Sequence record: LT603033.1
Length of the DNA stretch: 64,000 nt
Direction: 5' to 3' (one strand)
The translations under genes and the position numbers were made by a program. The notes below the pieces were generated by a model that saw only the letters and a list, made by a program, of their open reading frames with translations, ran no database searches and was not told the origin of the DNA. Shown here piece by piece: positions 12,999 through 31,272 of this stretch. Positions within the stretch are counted from its first letter, which is position 1. Each line of letters opens with the position of its first letter.

Positions 12999-13334
<336 letters not shown>

Positions 13335-13335
13335 A

Positions 13336-13518
13336 ATGACACACGAAGAATGGATGTCCAAACAGCATAAAGAACATGACTGCTTTGGGAATGGCATTCG
13401 TCAGGTACATTATGATATATTAAGAGATGAAAATCTTTTCAGGTCATATGTTTTGGATACCAGAAAACCCTGGTTTATATGCGAACTGGCATTTAGAAAG
13501 TCAAATAATCAAAACTAA
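13336..13518 (+). CDS. MTHEEW-family microprotein
   Basis: MTHEEW...PWFICELAFRK. Confidence 0.7.
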   Translation: MTHEEWMSKQHKEHDCFGNGIRQVHYDILRDENLFRSYVLDTRKPWFICELAFRKSNNQN

Positions 13519-13534
13519 ACAAGGAATACAAAAA

Positions 13535-13753
13535 ATGGAAACAACTTTATTAGAAGTTATTCAATCATTAAAACCTGAAGATGAGGTTCAAGTACTACTA
13601 CATGGTTATCGTGTAAAAGGTACTGTGGTTTTAGTCAATGATACAACATTGGTTATTACAGAAACAAACCCATATGATAGTAATCAACTTGCCAATATCC
13701 ATATCGATATCACTGGAATTATTGGTGTCGGTGTATCTAAAACACTTGCATAA
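13535..13753 (+). CDS. small beta-rich hypothetical protein
   Basis: AAGGA RBS; start corrected from track 13427. Confidence 0.65.
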   Translation: METTLLEVIQSLKPEDEVQVLLHGYRVKGTVVLVNDTTLVITETNPYDSNQLANIHIDITGIIGVGVSKTLA

Positions 13754-13786
13754 ATCATTAATTCATTATATAATGGGACATAACAT

Positions 13787-13902
<116 letters not shown>

Positions 13903-13906
13903 AATA

Positions 13907-13983
13907 CGGGGTATAGCACAATTGGATAGTGCAAGAGAATTCTAATCTCTAGGTTGGGGGTTCAAGTCCCTCTACCTCGGCCA
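13907..13983 (+). tRNA. tRNA-Arg(TCT)
   Basis: CGGGGTA/TACCTCG acceptor, stem AGAGA/TCTCT, loop ATTCTAA, CCA. Confidence 0.9.
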
Positions 13984-14006
13984 ATTTTAATTAAAGGTTA
14001 AAAACC

Positions 14007-14333
<327 letters not shown>

Positions 14334-14341
14334 AAAAAAAG

Positions 14342-14755
<414 letters not shown>

Positions 14756-14812
14756 CTAAATAATTCAGTACCAAGGAGATTAATATGTTTAAAGATGAAC
14801 GTCCAGATTTGT

Positions 14813-14850
<38 letters not shown>

Positions 14851-14856
14851 GAATTC

Positions 14857-15198
14857 CACAATCAGACGTATATGGTGTAAGTTACGTCGATGCAATCCAG
14901 AACAAGATCTCTGGTACTCTAGGAAGTGGTGAATGTTAACCTAGACGGGTTTGATAATTGGACGATAGGCAATTATTACTTGACTAGCAGGTTTAAACTA
15001 GAGGTGATAGTCCTTCACCAAACTGGAAAACCGGATGGACTTTTATTTAAAAGGGTAAGGCGTGGAAATATGTTTACAGAAGTTGCTTTTAGTAGCCTGT
15101 ACGCCCCACGTCAAGGTAGCCGAAAGGCAAGTTAAAACGGGTGGTTATAAAGCTGAATTAACAGCGGCGTTTAAAAGCGTCACCATCCATTTTTTTTT
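14857..15198 (+). ncRNA. candidate structured ncRNA (about 340 nt)
   Basis: Own promoter, GC-richer, many helices, ends in structure plus T-tract; no credible RBS/ORF. Confidence 0.55.
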
Positions 15199-15214
15199 AA
15201 TTAAAGTTGGTGAT

Positions 15215-15979
<765 letters not shown>

Positions 15980-15992
15980 TTCACATGATATA

Positions 15993-16810
<818 letters not shown>

Positions 16811-16813
16811 ATA

Positions 16814-16900
<87 letters not shown>

Positions 16901-16955
16901 GACTGCCAAACAGCTTGAAGTACTTTGTAGTGCTGCACCTATGCCGACACTTGGC

Positions 16956-17056
<101 letters not shown>

Positions 17057-17068
17057 TATCTTACTTCT

Positions 17069-17158
<90 letters not shown>

Positions 17159-28429: not shown

Positions 28430-29395
28430 GTGAAAAAGCTTGATTTAAATACAATTGCCGAAGAAGTTCTGGATGAATGTTTTGCTAATGAAGAAGTCAA
28501 CACACTAGAAGCCTTAGATTTCGTTGAAGATAAAGATGATAATGAAGGTAAAGTACAAAGCAGTTTCAAATATAATATTACACTTAAGCGACCACCAAAT
28601 GTTTCCAATGAAGATCTAATTCGTGATATTCAAGCTGGTATCAATGTAAAGAAAAACACTGAACTGTTAGTTCGTTACAATTATGGACTGATTATTGATG
28701 TAGCAAGTAAATGTACTTGTTATATCCCATTTGAAGATAAGATTTCATATGGTGTTGAGGGGTTCATGAGAGCACTAAAAACCTTTGATCTTAATAAGAA
28801 TGTTAAGTTCATTACCTATGCTTCTTCTAGTATTTACATGACAGTCTATAACGAAAGTTCTGACGCTAACTATATGGTACACTTCCCACGTTATATGAGT
28901 GTTCATAAGATCAAAGTAAAAAGATTCTGCCAGGAATATATGCGTAAACATGGTGTTCGCCCAACACCTGAAATAATCTCAGAGGGTACTGGGATTGAGA
29001 TTCAGCATGTTAATAATTGTTTATTATTTCAAAGCGAATACACTTCACTGGATGCACCATTAGACGGTGTTACAGATGGTACATTAGGTGACATTATTCA
29101 TTCACCTGCTTCTGATTTTAACCTCAATGTTGATAGTATCCGTGCACCTTTACGTTATGCTATCAATGAACTGACTAACGAATTGAGTACTAAAGAACGT
29201 GAGATTATCCAGCGTGTTCATGGTCTAGGTGAATATGAACCTGAAACGCTTCGTGAGATTGCTGATAATGGTTTTGTTGATGATAATGGAAAATATGTTA
29301 AATCCCGTTCATCAATACACCGAAAGTACAGTGAAGCTATGCAAAAGCTTAAGAAGTTAGTACTTGCAAAAGGGTACGAATACGAAGATTTCTAA
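28430..29395 (+). CDS. sigma70-family RNA polymerase sigma factor
   Basis: Region 2 GFMRALKTFD...KFITYA, region 3 TSLDAP, region 4 EREII...ETLREIA; GTG start after AGGAG. Confidence 0.9.
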   Translation: MKKLDLNTIAEEVLDECFANEEVNTLEALDFVEDKDDNEGKVQSSFKYNITLKRPPNVSNEDLIRDIQAGINVKKNTELLVRYNYGLIIDVASKCTCYIPFEDKISYGVEGFMRALKTFDLNKNVKFITYASSSIYMTVYNESSDANYMVHFPRYMSVHKIKVKRFCQEYMRKHGVRPTPEIISEGTGIEIQHVNNCLLFQSEYTSLDAPLDGVTDGTLGDIIHSPASDFNLNVDSIRAPLRYAINELTNELSTKEREIIQRVHGLGEYEPETLREIADNGFVDDNGKYVKSRSSIHRKYSEAMQKLKKLVLAKGYEYEDF

Positions 29396-29400
29396 AGAAC

Positions 29401-29429
29401 AAGGGTTGGCTTATGCCAACCTTTTTTTT
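29401..29429 (+). terminator. intrinsic terminator
   Basis: AGGGTTGGC-TTAT-GCCAACCT plus T-tract. Confidence 0.8.
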
Positions 29430-29462
29430 ATGGGATGAAGTAAAAGTTTGTGATATAATTAT

Positions 29463-29935
29463 CTTGTACAATTCTGTTGGCATGATATTCATGTACCTGA
29501 TCCACTCGAAAACGTAGAGGGCAGTTGAGCAGTCCGACAGTGCGAACAGCAAAAGAAACCCGTTAGATGTGGGCATAGTTTGAACCCCTCACGGCAATGC
29601 GGCTGTATAAAGAACCACGTTAGGATAGCTGGTGGTTCCTTGATAGACATATAAGGATAACACCTTACGAATTATCTAAGGGAGAGTTATCGAATTTTGT
29701 ACAGGAAAGTTGCGTCCAAAATTTGAGTACTCACATTAAGTATTTGATTGCATAGATACTTAATGAAGATACACTATGTTTAAAAGTGTAGACCGTCATA
29801 TGAAACTGAAGTAGAGAGAAACAGGATGACCCGCTTTCGCACTCGTTATGAGTAATCTTCAATGCAATAGCTCTGATACCATCAGCGTCAAATTTCCCTC
29901 CTTGTGGGGGGAAGAAAAATCCCTTCCTCAAATCC
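29463..29935 (+). ncRNA. candidate large structured ncRNA (about 470 nt)
   Basis: Starts after TG-n-TATAAT at 29451-29459; long-range and local helices; GC-richer; no + strand ORF. Confidence 0.55.
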
Positions 29936-29953
29936 CGTCAATATTAAAAGTCC

Positions 29954-29982
29954 TTGACAGTTATTAATCATTCGCGTAGAAT
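29954..29982 (+). promoter_or_regulatory. sigma70-type promoter
   Basis: TTGACA-N17-TAGAAT. Confidence 0.75.
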
Positions 29983-30046
29983 ACGTAGTATTAGAAGCGA
30001 ACAGACATCTCGAAGAGATGGATGATTAACCATTAAGGAATATCAA

Positions 30047-30256
30047 ATGAATTCAGTAATCTTTTTAGTAGTCGCTTTCTCTGTTAATTCCGGTGTACAA
30101 ATAACCCCAATGAATTCCATGAATCAATGCATAGCAGTACGTGATAGTACATACGAACAAGTAAACAAAGATATTTGGATTACAGTTAGTAAAGAACAAA
30201 TGTGGTGTTACAATAGTAATACTAACACAAAGCTTATTGTAGGACAAACTCAATGA
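30047..30256 (+). CDS. small exported or membrane protein
   Basis: Hydrophobic N-terminus, two Cys; AAGGA RBS. Confidence 0.68.
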   Translation: MNSVIFLVVAFSVNSGVQITPMNSMNQCIAVRDSTYEQVNKDIWITVSKEQMWCYNSNTNTKLIVGQTQ

Positions 30257-30483
30257 GTTATGGCGTTCGTTTTGAGATTCGTTCTATTGTCATCGATGCA
30301 GAGAAACAAGTATCGTTAGATGGTGATATACGTGAAATTTATCTATCATGTATACGTGCGAAATCTGAAGCAGATGCCTTAGTACAAATGTATAGTTTTA
30401 ACTTTTCAAATGGATTCTATTTGGTACGAGTTGTTGAAGTTAAAAAAGTAATTCTTGGTTGTTGCATAGAAGGAATAATGTAA
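30253..30483 (+). CDS. hypothetical protein
   Basis: Coupled; IRAKSEADA motif. Confidence 0.65.
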   Translation: MSYGVRFEIRSIVIDAEKQVSLDGDIREIYLSCIRAKSEADALVQMYSFNFSNGFYLVRVVEVKKVILGCCIEGIM

Positions 30484-31272
30484 ATGAGCACTATCGATGA
30501 ACTGATTCAACGGAATTCAAAATATTACCAACCATCAGAAATTGTGGATAACATTACTAAATCTGAGTTTGGACCGAACACACGCAAACTCATTCATGTA
30601 ATGTCACGTGATGGCTTTAAATGTGATTGTTGTGGTGAATCAAATGTAGTATTCACTTTACACAAGCACAGTACTAAAGATCGTTATAAATTCAGACCTT
30701 ATGTACTTAAAGGGAAACGCCTTGTACGCATGACGTTAGACCATAATGTACTGGACTGTCTTCAGGGCGGTAATGATAAAGAGAACATGACTGCACTGTG
30801 TGAAGATTGTAACGCATTACGCCAGCATAAGTTTGCTGAATACAGTGAGTTTAAACACTGGTATCATAACGCGGATCGTTCAATCGAGCCTGACGTTAAC
30901 TACTGCTTCATTGAGTACATTAAGAATGCCAAAGATACATACATTCTTAAATCAATGTCACCTATTACCGTGTTTCCTGAGAACCTATTCACTACATTAA
31001 ACAATAGTTTTATTGTAGGTGATATTGATGCATTCAAGTATTTTGACAAAGGTGCAAAACATTTTGAAATTCAATGTCTTAGTACTGCACTATGTGAACT
31101 CATTAAAATTTACATAAAAGAGTATTTGGGTATTGACAATGTACGTGTACCAGAGTATACTTTTTCTATTGAATTCGATTGTGAATCAATCAAAGAGTTT
31201 GGAATTCTTTTCAATAAACAAATAGAACTTGCAATTCAAAACGAAATCAAGTACTATACTACTAACATTTAA
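30484..31272 (+). CDS. HNH endonuclease-like protein
   Basis: RDGFKCDCCG ... MTLDH..GGNDKENMTALCEDCN. Confidence 0.72.
   Translation: MSTIDELIQRNSKYYQPSEIVDNITKSEFGPNTRKLIHVMSRDGFKCDCCGESNVVFTLHKHSTKDRYKFRPYVLKGKRLVRMTLDHNVLDCLQGGNDKENMTALCEDCNALRQHKFAEYSEFKHWYHNADRSIEPDVNYCFIEYIKNAKDTYILKSMSPITVFPENLFTTLNNSFIVGDIDAFKYFDKGAKHFEIQCLSTALCELIKIYIKEYLGIDNVRVPEYTFSIEFDCESIKEFGILFNKQIELAIQNEIKYYTTNI

Follow-up and report, generated by a model that had tools for sequence, protein, structure and literature searches.

Large, intricate and covarying RNAs are rare in bacteria and their phages, examples being rRNA, RNase P, group I and group II introns, tmRNA, OLE, ROOL, GOLLD and raiA, and each of these has repaid study. 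ROOL is a large RNA with many helices and multiple pseudoknots that is encoded by phages and prophages and has neither a partner protein gene nor a known function (PMC12286853; PMC5737381). In GOLLD, for which no function is known either, the 3' part is strongly conserved, and the rest varies more and can contain optional insertions (PMC12286853).

The window that we analyzed, 64,000 nucleotides of sequence record LT603033.1, is from Escherichia phage vB_Eco_slurp01, an Asteriusvirus (Rak2-like jumbo phage). Positions 29466-29941 on its plus strand very likely represent a self-contained gene for a structured non-coding RNA (ncRNA) of about 475 nt, whose stability is inferred as there are no expression data. 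Our confidence is high for the existence, strand, extent and fold of this gene. The initial annotation had proposed that an ORF-free gap at 29463-29935 holds a large, ornate and unassignable ncRNA of about 470 nt, resembling ROOL and GOLLD in size and complexity. This proposal held, supported by covariation, a promoter, the lack of a conserved ORF and the lack of an Rfam match, and the limits were correct to within about 5 nt, as judged from 39 homologues in which conservation begins a few bases past the -10 element and ends at CGTCAA (29937-29941). The gap was also confirmed to be bounded, as had been claimed, by a terminator and an extended -10 element (29451-29459) on one side and a promoter at 29954 on the other (Table 1). 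The upstream gene (28430-29395) encodes a sigma factor according to its annotation in UE-S1 and G17, and downstream of the ncRNA are small ORFs (30047-30483) followed by an HNH gene (30484-31272). The tRNA genes of the window, identified using ARAGORN, are at 13021-17148, about 12 kb from the ncRNA. Several GenBank records have three to four "hypothetical proteins" annotated over the ncRNA locus, and we consider these annotations likely to be spurious.

The slurp01 genome has four paralogues of the ncRNA, all on the plus strand and all in CDS-free gaps; the window contains only copy 1, the three others being outside it. Those three are between protein-coding genes and none is near tRNAs. Rak2-like jumbo phage genomes have three to six paralogues each. 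Matches were found in 62-71 jumbo-phage GenBank records, at one to five places in each, and two pattern scans of IMG/VR identified 44 and 66 true loci. The copies identified in pattern scans numbered five each in CBB, GAP32, Yen9-04 and BF, and two in RaK2. The RNAs of the family are 480-570 nt long. In the CBB/GAP32/Yen9-04 group the copies form five or six paralogue clades, with one copy per genome in each clade, showing that the paralogy is ancient.

Evidence for the fold was obtained from 39 non-redundant copies (<95% identity) in a plain MAFFT alignment, which is conservative in that it is not structure-aware. The structure model was curated by hand and comprises 16 helices with a total of 93 pairs, and includes two pseudoknots. 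In this model 92.3% of cells were paired, compared to 76.0% in shuffles (none of 500 reached the observed value) and 37-47% when the partners were slid. Changes on both sides were found for 64 of the 93 pairs, and there were 540 compensatory cells versus 61-86 in the slid controls. As curation and counting used the same alignment, the percentage of paired cells is somewhat inflated, an effect that is smaller for the two-sided changes and the slid controls. The local helices were recovered independently by RNAalifold, and an unbiased scan of column pairs returned the same helices, including pseudoknot PK1. Helices B, C, H, I and J were paired in 100% of cells across the 39 copies, and helix A has eight aligned pairs, seven of them changed on both sides, with 96.7% paired. 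The evidence for the strand is provided by the promoter motif that most copies have upstream on the same strand (see below) and by G.U pairs, although the ratio of G.U to A.C cells (153 versus 86) is only about 1.8: 23 of the 39 copies have G.U as the middle pair of helix J, and in stem M the partner of the invariant G-run varies from C to U only, so that G.U is kept on the plus strand. The folding energy of copy 1 alone was unremarkable (z = -1.5 on either strand), and the case for structure is therefore comparative and not thermodynamic.

Together these data define a 5' domain composed of a three-way junction and nested helices, and a 3' domain that is built around two pseudoknots and in which many of the unpaired nucleotides are invariant. 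This core is decorated by variable peripheral hairpins and optional apical modules (Table 1).

Table 1. Coordinates of the ncRNA gene, its flanking signals and its structural elements (window positions except where genome positions are indicated)
Feature	Position	Strand	Evidence or remarks
Intrinsic terminator of upstream sigma-70-family gene	29401..29424	+	Terminator scan: 10-bp stem, then T run
-35-like box TGGGAT	29431..29436	+	Read from sequence; 17 nt upstream of -10 hexamer
Extended -10 element TGATATAAT	29451..29459	+	Read from sequence; matches TGnTATAAT seen in homologues
Structured ncRNA gene (very likely), copy 1 of four in slurp01	29466..29941	+	Conservation limits in alignments, covariation
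5' three-way junction	29474..29540	+	Helix A (29474-80/29534-40) encloses hairpins H1 and H2
Hairpin H1 (CATGA/TCATG)	29481-93	+	Hairpin of at least 4 bp in 38/39 copies, unrelated sequences, often GAAA tetraloop
Hairpin H2	29497-29507/29517-29524	+	Conserved loop GAAAAYGUA; 7/8 pairs change on both sides
Helix B enclosing helix C and variable apical extension	29546..29606	+	Flanked by invariant AAAGAAAC and GGCAAUGCGGC
Helix B	29546-50/29602-06	+	100% paired; 3/5 pairs change on both sides
Helix C	29560-63/29591-94	+	Invariant
Hairpin D (GAACCAC/GTGGTTC)	29612..29638	+	Two-sided changes in 7/7 pairs; as many as 4 pair types at one position
Joiner GAUAGAYAUAU, hairpin E and single-stranded UAAGGGAG	29642..29684	+	Joiner and UAAGGGAG (29677-84) invariant
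Hairpin E (TAAGG/CCTTA)	29652-56/29663-67	+	4/5 pairs change on both sides
Stem K	29684-87/29729-32 within 29684..29732	+	Stem in 39/39 copies, unrelated sequences
Optional module AAUUUUG-UACAGGAAAGUUGCGUC-CAAAAUU capping stem K	29693-29723	+	Missing in some copies; caps stem L in others
Hairpin F (CATTAAGTAT/ATACTTAATG)	29734-43/29756-65	+	6/6 counted pairs change on both sides; loop forms PK1
Pseudoknot PK1: F loop AUUGCAU (29747-53) with AUGCAAU (29862-68)	29747..29868	+	7 pairs, 6 two-sided, 94.6% paired
Hairpin G (TACACT/AGTGTA)	29770..29790	+	5/5 pairs change on both sides
Pseudoknotted core, helix H crossing helices I and J	29791..29861	+	Invariant unpaired GACCG, AUAG, AAACAG, CCCG
Helix H (GTCAT/ATGAC)	29795-99/29826-30	+	100% paired; 3 pairs changed on both sides
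Helix I	29807-11/29857-61	+	100% paired; 4 pairs changed on both sides
Helix J	29814-18/29834-38	+	100% paired; 4 pairs changed on both sides
Hairpin L (ACTC/GAGT)	29841-44/29850-53	+	Part of pseudoknotted core
Hairpin N region, ends in first CGUCAA motif	29872..29891	+	Tentative: register varies by copy; 72.5% paired, one-sided changes only
3' hairpin M, C-run with invariant GGGGGG (CCCTCC..GGGGGG, 29896-29911)	29896..29941	+	Tail included
Conserved tail CAAAUCCCGUCAA	29929-41	+	Conservation ends here
Sigma-70-type promoter TTGACA-17-TAGAAT for downstream genes	29954..29982	+	11/12 consensus; outside ncRNA
Other slurp01 paralogues	genome 135427-135898, 188047-188448, 266748-267308	+	

Most of the stems that the initial annotation had predicted were upheld by comparison: CATGA/TCATG, GAACCAC/GTGGTTC and TAAGG/CCTTA correspond to H1, D and E, and CATTAAGTAT/ATACTTAATG, TACACT/AGTGTA, GTCAT/ATGAC and ACTC/GAGT to F, G, H and L. 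Two predictions failed. A domain of about 240 nt was said to be closed by long-range pairing of TTGTACAA; this pairing (29463-74 with 29692-705) exists in copy 1 but is not conserved, as the homologous columns were 49% paired, which is the level of chance, and several copies have no partner segment. A 3' stem GGGGGAAG/CTTCCTC had also been predicted, and the conserved pairing in that region is instead between the C-run and the G-run at 29896-29911. The checks put forward with that annotation included an Rfam search and a covariation analysis, with a conserved minus-strand ORF as a ground for refutation; the search gave no match, covariation was strong as judged from counts of compensatory changes, and no such ORF was found.

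Two additional pairings were considered. The GAUAG joiner and the CUAUC of the N loop are 93% paired with no covariation, and a tertiary pair between them is possible but no more than a candidate. Pairing of the 3' strand of helix E with a downstream UAAGG was rejected, as covariation was seen for the upstream partner whereas the downstream UAAGG does not vary, and helix E stands.

The comparative data all but exclude the possibility that the locus is a DNA-level repeat (a recombination or packaging site, a protein-binding array or a mobile-element remnant) in which RNA structure is incidental. In favor of a repeat, the copies are dispersed, part of one is labeled as a repeat_region in UE-S1, and copies in bacteria are beside integrase genes. 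However, compensatory changes preserve at least 12 helices and two pseudoknots, and pseudoknots and strand-specific G.U pairs would be meaningless in duplex DNA. In addition, a promoter is conserved just upstream, and the ends of the copies showed neither target duplications nor terminal repeats, whether inverted or direct. The UE-S1 record is the one in which we noted the repeat_region label, which covers only part of the ncRNA repeat.

No ORF was conserved in position and frame among the 39 copies on either strand. The longest ORFs in these copies were 31-85 aa, with differing positions and strands; the minus-strand ORF in the window (66 aa) is only 43 aa long in the UE-S1 copy, which is 91% identical, and the alignment gaps among the copies are not multiples of three. 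A mini-ORF following the SD-like UAAGGGAG was rejected by inspection, as only a few copies have an ATG there, with no conservation of frame or length.

Searches of the whole window against Rfam 15 at gathering score identified tRNAs only, and at E values of up to 10 the region 29350-30060 had only weak chance matches, such as SraG and PrrB, mostly on the terminator. A gathering search with 12 diverse members of the family identified only an ffs gene. There was no Rfam match at the ncRNA region to ROOL, GOLLD, OLE, HEARO, 6S, RNase P, tmRNA or group I/II introns, and ARAGORN found no tmRNA at the locus, only tRNAs. A resemblance to the hammerhead in short motifs was dropped as it had no support in Rfam or in helix order. 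No published description of the family was found in the open-access literature that we searched, and we cannot exclude that it was described earlier elsewhere; based on this and the lack of an Rfam 15 match, the family is probably undescribed.

Another possibility is that the ncRNA is a very divergent RNase P RNA, tmRNA, group I/II intron, 6S, ROOL or GOLLD, and short motifs (CAGUGCGAACAG...AAACC and ACAG..ACCCGCUUUCG) do recall RNase P. We regard this explanation as all but excluded given the absence of any Rfam match at E values of up to 10 on the region or at gathering score on the 12 members, the absence of a tmRNA by ARAGORN and the absence of flanking exons. The helix order also differs from the architectures of RNase P and group I introns.

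A perfect TGnTATAAT was present within 60 nt upstream of helix A, on the same strand, in 36 of the 39 non-redundant copies, and the homologues have TGGGACA, TGAAAC(G) or TGGAACG at the equivalent -35 spacing. These -35 boxes match the "divergent RpoD-like" promoter with a TGAAACG -35 element that has been described for phages CBB and GAP32 (PMC5259590). We infer from the sequence that transcription starts near 29466, although this has not been measured. In this reading, a sigma-70-type RNA polymerase holoenzyme would transcribe the ncRNA using the gene's own extended -10 promoter, as it would the tRNA genes of the phage. TGnTATAAT was found 31 times in the window, versus 9.2 expected, with 27 of the occurrences on the plus strand. 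Some of these motifs directly precede tRNA genes.

The 3' end is less clear. Copy 1 of slurp01 has no recognizable terminator of its own, while 22 of the 39 copies have a terminator-like hairpin and U run after the hairpin N region, ahead of the hairpin and tail that are conserved at the 3' side, and the true 3' end of the ncRNA is therefore ambiguous. As we found no transcriptome of a Rak2-like enterobacterial phage in the literature searched, and no family member has expression data, both ends of the transcript are only inferred.

The position of copy 1 upstream of plus-strand genes, and the possibility of read-through in the absence of a terminator, raised the alternative that the ncRNA is a cis-acting leader or regulator of the downstream small ORFs and the HNH gene. 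We consider this very unlikely. A strong separate promoter lies between the ncRNA and these genes, copy 3 is flanked by genes on the minus strand, the genes downstream of the different copies are unrelated, the ncRNA converges on a repressor gene in three bacterial loci, and most other copies have a terminator-like hairpin. The ncRNA is thus not predicted to be a leader for neighboring genes.

Neighboring genes differ among the copies, and no conserved flanking protein partner was found for the four slurp01 copies. A 6S-like or ribonucleoprotein role, which had been suggested by the adjacent sigma factor gene, is unsupported: since the other copies in slurp01 and in other genomes do not adjoin a sigma gene, this adjacency is incidental. 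6S RNA, about 180 nt long, is a rod-like, interrupted hairpin with a central bubble; it resembles an open promoter and binds the sigma-70 holoenzyme. The slurp01 ncRNA differs from it in being about 475 nt long, multi-branched and pseudoknotted, and in having no Rfam match. A proposed link to the HNH gene was likewise unsupported, as that gene is not a conserved neighbor; its sole trace elsewhere is a weak similarity (28%) between the HNH ORF downstream of copy 1 and an ORF upstream of copy 4.

Full-length single copies of the ncRNA were also found in integrated elements of Enterobacteriaceae, while a plasmid search gave no match to the family. At eight bacterial loci, an integrase gene is adjacent in six and a CI-type repressor gene in four; in three loci the ncRNA lies between the two, and in three it converges on the repressor gene. 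Comparison of the 8-kb neighborhoods of the bacterial copies with the phage genome identified no protein in common, and no protein gene travels with the ncRNA. We infer that the ncRNA acts in trans in the enterobacterial cell, alone or with a conserved host component, because copy 3 is located between two minus-strand genes, the downstream genes have their own promoter, the neighbors differ, and the neighborhoods of the bacterial copies, in integrated elements, share no protein with the phage genome.

The bacterial loci also bear on a further alternative, in which each copy marks a replication origin. In this model an RNA from a middle-type promoter would form a persistent RNA-DNA hybrid near the G-run/CGUCAR end and then be processed into a primer for DNA synthesis, similar to what happens at T4 oriF and oriG or with ColE1 RNA II. 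Like those primers, the ncRNA is promoter-driven and several hundred nt long, and the family has a G-rich element near the 3' end and dispersed copies. Several observations favor such a model: four to six copies are dispersed in one orientation around a genome of about 350 kb; the promoter class with the TGAAACG -35 element was reported mostly ahead of DNA-synthesis genes in CBB (PMC5259590); the GGGGGG run does not vary among the copies, and conservation ends abruptly at CGUCAR; and the phage has genes for RNase HI and a Pol I-like protein. However, the bacterial copies are beside integrase genes (6/8), and between integrase and repressor genes in three cases, which would be an unusual place for the origin of a temperate phage and where there is no obvious replication gene. 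Moreover, the two pseudoknots with covariation, along with dozens of unpaired bases that do not vary, far exceed the needs of known primer RNAs; a pseudoknotted, deeply conserved core is, to our knowledge, not present in the ColE1 RNA II or T4 oriF/oriG primers. No conserved AT-rich unwinding element or iteron set was found downstream of the copies. On balance, origin priming is very unlikely, and an RNA that acts in trans remains our preferred reading.

By analogy, the closest counterparts of the family are ROOL and GOLLD, as large ornate RNAs of phages and prophages. Several features expected of an RNA of this kind are present: the ncRNA is longer than 400 nt, it has many helices and more than one covariation-supported pseudoknot, and it is encoded by phages and prophage-like elements without a protein gene dedicated to it. 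The frequent location of such RNAs beside tRNA islands is not shared. As with ROOL, the slurp01 ncRNA is large, has many helices and multiple pseudoknots and is without an associated protein gene; it differs in having no match to the Rfam model, in not being near tRNA islands, where ROOL is often found, and in that its family has three to six paralogues per genome and is hosted by Enterobacteriaceae and their jumbo phages. The likeness to GOLLD is in the conserved 3' part and the variable remainder with optional insertions. However, GOLLD is often longer than 800 nt, versus 480-570 nt in the slurp01 family, there is again no Rfam match, and the slurp01 ncRNA has no tRNA embedded or adjacent.

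Based on this analogy, the ncRNA might act as a ribozyme or might self-assemble into an RNA particle of the ROOL/GOLLD kind, although both catalysis and assembly are inferred only. That an RNA-only particle or ribozyme acts on host machinery is a guess which we lean against; nothing that we computed bears directly on function. A bolder reading, which we offer as a possibility, is that the family represents a novel class of large RNA, catalytic or self-assembling, and is an enterobacterial counterpart of ROOL and GOLLD, whose three to six paralogues form an RNA-only particle or ribozyme, perhaps as hetero-oligomers, that targets a conserved host machine, for example the ribosome, RNA decay or RNA-sensing defense. 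If correct, this would explain why a protein-free RNA gene is kept by lytic jumbo phages and integrated elements alike. The presence of ancient paralogues in multiple copies in the jumbo phages, and of a single copy in the integrated elements, suggests a function that is protein-independent and directed at the host.

Within the Rak2-like clade, the only RNA of comparable size that is supported by RNA-seq is ncRNA002 of PA5oct, a distant relative that is a Pseudomonas phage. This "putative lncRNA" is about 450 nt long, is located on the plus strand in an ORF-free gap and accounts for 1.2-5% of phage RNA-seq reads (PMC7318152). It was rejected as a homologue, as we found no similarity and no invariant motif of the family in it, based on reading of the sequence only and without a covariance model.

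The family of RNAs of about 500 nt described here, with two pseudoknots, has unusually strong comparative support. Since it is found in E. coli phages it is, unlike ROOL and GOLLD, open to direct genetics and biochemistry in a laboratory strain of E. coli; the recorded host of Sharanji, one of the phages that carry the ncRNA, is E. coli K-12 MG1655.

Comparison of 39 copies of the family, all below 95% identity and with near-duplicates taken out, demonstrated that the RNA structure is real. Collection of jumbo phage homologues had been proposed in the initial annotation and, once done, it revealed covariation in these copies. When every pair of columns was scanned blindly for stacks of variable, mainly canonical pairs, a dozen helices emerged, including the pairing of a loop with a distal segment, and local helices were recovered by RNAalifold. 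The model (93 pairs, 16 helices), which was curated and counted on the MAFFT alignment A3, had standard pairs in 92.3% of cells, compared to 76.0 ± 0.4% after shuffling (0/500 reached the observed value) and 37–47% when partners were slid by 1–3 columns. Pairs changed on both sides numbered 64 of 93 (46.9 shuffled, 22–32 slid), compensatory cells 540 (152.3 and 61–86) and the covariation score was 0.439 (0.161 and 0.06–0.09). Helices B, C, H, I and J paired in 39/39 sequences, and hairpin H1 and stem K, present in 38/39 and 39/39 copies, respectively, were of unrelated sequence. The window copy lies on a long branch in the tree of copies, but it has double compensatory changes of its own, such as GUCAU/AUGAC in helix H versus GUUGC/GCAAC in most copies, and its fold is therefore under selection. 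Seven of the nine stems in the initial annotation were confirmed; its closure of a 240-nt domain failed (49% paired in homologues), as did its 3' stem, whose register was not conserved.

Features of the RNA locus, the RNA fold and the slurp01 paralogues (window coordinates unless stated; L-numbers label sequence pieces carrying other copies)
Feature	Position	Remarks
Seven tRNA genes	13021-17148	Gly, Ser, Arg, Ser, Met, Asn, Thr
Sigma-70-family gene	28430-29395	directly upstream of RNA locus
Intrinsic terminator	29401-29424	of sigma-70-family gene
Extended -10, TGATATAAT	29451-29459	upstream of RNA
Helix A	29474-80 with 29534-40	opens 5' domain; closes three-way junction with H1 and H2
Helix B	29546-50 with 29602-06	encloses helix C and variable extension
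Hairpins D, E		after helix B; linked by invariant GAUAGAYAUAU, then invariant UAAGGGAG
Stem K		3' domain; carries optional apical module
Optional module, AAUUUUG-UACAAUAUAGAUCCGUC-CAAAAUU	29693-29723	~30 nt
Hairpin F		after stem K
Pseudoknot 1	29747-53 with 29862-68	first strand is loop of hairpin F
Hairpin G		after hairpin F
Helix H	29795-99 with 29826-30	crosses helices I and J (pseudoknot 2)
Hairpins L, N, M		3' elements; N less certain; M a C-run/G-run hairpin
Conserved tail	to 29941	ends CGUCAA
Sigma-70-type promoter, TTGACA-17-TAGAAT	29954-29982	next promoter downstream of RNA
HNH-family ORF	30484-31272	downstream of RNA
Paralogue	genome 135427-135898 (L005:21427-21898)	+; CDS-free gap
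Paralogue	genome 188047-188448 (L006:24047-24448)	+; CDS-free gap
Paralogue	genome 266748-267308 (L008:2748-3308)	+; CDS-free gap

The variation was also asymmetric between strands. There were 153 G.U cells versus 86 A.C cells, the middle pair of helix J was G.U in 23/39 copies, and stem M varied solely from C to U, facing an invariant G-run, all of which is consistent with a + strand RNA. The possibility that these are repeats acting at the DNA level is very unlikely, as it is contradicted by the G.U asymmetry and the pseudoknot covariation.

A perfect TGnTATAAT was located within 60 nt upstream of helix A in 36 of the 39 copies, with a -35-like box (TGGGACA, TGAAAC(G) or TGGAACG) ~17 nt further upstream, which corresponds to the "divergent RpoD-like promoter" of phages CBB and GAP32 (PMC5259590). 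The extended -10 motif TGNTATAAT occurred 31 times in the window versus 9.2 expected (three-fold), 27 of these on the + strand, and two tRNA genes, at 13794 and 15615, have TGATATAAT ~11 nt upstream, the same promoter type as that of the RNA gene. Judged from sequence alone, this motif is probably the main early or middle promoter element of slurp01. Sequence comparison established that the locus is a gene with its own promoter, encoding a large RNA with pseudoknots. Its start near 29466 and its 3' end are inferred without expression data, and no transcriptome of Rak2-like enterobacterial phages was found in the literature searched. The 3' end is ambiguous because 22/39 copies have a terminator-like hairpin and U run between hairpins N and M that the window copy lacks.

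By BLAST, the intergenic region 29396-30046 (651 nt) was 100% identical to vB_Eco_slurp01 (LT603033.1), an Asteriusvirus among the Rak2-like jumbo phages, at equal coordinates. Matches of ~70% identity were found in phages of Erwinia, Serratia, Pectobacterium, Cronobacter, Yersinia, Salmonella, Klebsiella and Xanthomonas, with 4–5 matching places per jumbo phage genome. The three slurp01 paralogues were 70–80% identical to the window copy, in gaps of 680–840 nt; no second copy was found inside the 64,000-nt window. All slurp01 copies are in + orientation in gaps without annotated CDS, and one is flanked on both sides by minus-strand genes. Two IMG/VR scans with patterns made from invariant motifs yielded 44 and 66 true loci, with five copies each in CBB, GAP32, Yen9-04 and BF and two in RaK2. 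In a scan of a phage collection the family was confined to Rak2-like jumbo phages, which have kept several ancient paralogues.

The four slurp01 copies had no common neighboring gene, except for a weak likeness between two HNH-like ORFs, the one downstream of the RNA and a 203-aa ORF ~1.1 kb upstream of copy 4 (28% over 127 aa, E 1e-6), which are likely just two homing-endonuclease-like genes of slurp01. The initial annotation had placed a candidate at 29463-29935, and this position and its flanking signals held; its suggested links to the sigma factor and the HNH gene failed, these associations being incidental. A cis-acting leader of the downstream genes is very unlikely considering the separate downstream promoter, the minus-strand neighbors of copy 3 and the unrelated downstream genes.

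Only short ORFs (34–75 aa) lie between the extended -10 and the 29954 promoter, and across the 39 copies the longest ORFs (31–85 aa) vary in place and strand. Across the orthologous locus of PP886230, PQ330092, OR699282, PQ390715, OR699188 and others, 3–4 "hypothetical proteins" are annotated, calls which are likely spurious, and in phage UE-S1 a "repeat_region" covers the 5' domain. The Rfam check suggested initially was run: Rfam 15 gave no family matching the RNA in the whole window at the gathering score, nothing relevant for the locus at E up to 10, and no matching family for 12 diverse members. These results contradict a divergent member of a known RNA class, which we consider very improbable. 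ARAGORN found tRNAs only and no tmRNA. We found no description of the family in the literature searched, whose coverage was incomplete. Comparative support is strong for a real, apparently undescribed, large structured RNA family of unknown function.

A bacterial scan with a 3' core pattern, using one genome per species, identified eight true full-length members and ~82 chance matches. The members were from Serratia fonticola (complete chromosome, L156), Serratia sp. 2723, Enterobacter chinensis (L170), Silvania hatchlandensis, Enterobacteriaceae RIT714 and three metagenome-assembled contigs. Each copy was single, full-length and inside an integrated element of Enterobacteriaceae. An integrase gene adjoins the RNA gene in 6/8 loci (four large serine recombinases, two tyrosine integrases) and a CI/LexA-type repressor gene in 4/8, three of these in the order integrase-RNA-repressor. 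The S. fonticola and S. hatchlandensis copies, the only loci whose promoter region was seen, have their own extended -10-like element. Among complete E. coli genomes, only 2/5426 carried a relative, in an island adjoining ffs; this island (LR-29-1, L181) also encodes DUF4326, DUF488 and dual-OB-domain genes. No family member was found in the plasmids searched, and no protein was common to the bacterial 8-kb neighborhoods and the slurp01 genome. The RNA gene alone, with no accompanying protein, has passed between the jumbo phages, which are lytic, and elements integrated in the same family of hosts.

Several features would suit each copy being an origin-priming transcript, namely the class of the promoter, the dispersal of the copies, the invariance of the G-run and the sharpness of the 3' boundary. 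However, the bacterial copies beside integrase or repressor genes and the elaborate core make this very unlikely. We infer that the RNA would act in trans in the enterobacterial cell, either alone or together with a host component that is conserved. Around the two pseudoknots, many unpaired nucleotides are invariant, which suggests, by analogy, a precise tertiary core as in ribozymes, ligand-binding RNAs or the self-assembling ROOL and GOLLD. Like this family, ROOL and GOLLD are encoded by phages or prophages, contain multiple pseudoknots and lack both a protein partner and a known function (PMC12286853). The Pseudomonas phage PA5oct, a distant relative in the clade, has a highly expressed, RNA-seq-supported 451-nt "lncRNA" (L061:952-1402), a possible analogue without evident sequence similarity to the family.

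Peripheral elements varied among copies. The AAUUUUG module (window copy; also L006, L019, L035, L042 and others) caps stem K in most copies, stem L in others and both in some, and is missing in a few; its behavior resembles that of a transposable peripheral element, as inferred from the sequences. One paralogue clade (L005:21330-21400, L014, L016, L018, L029, L033, L034, L041) has a GC-rich hairpin and U run between the promoter and helix A, which could be a stem-loop protecting the 5' end or else an attenuator.
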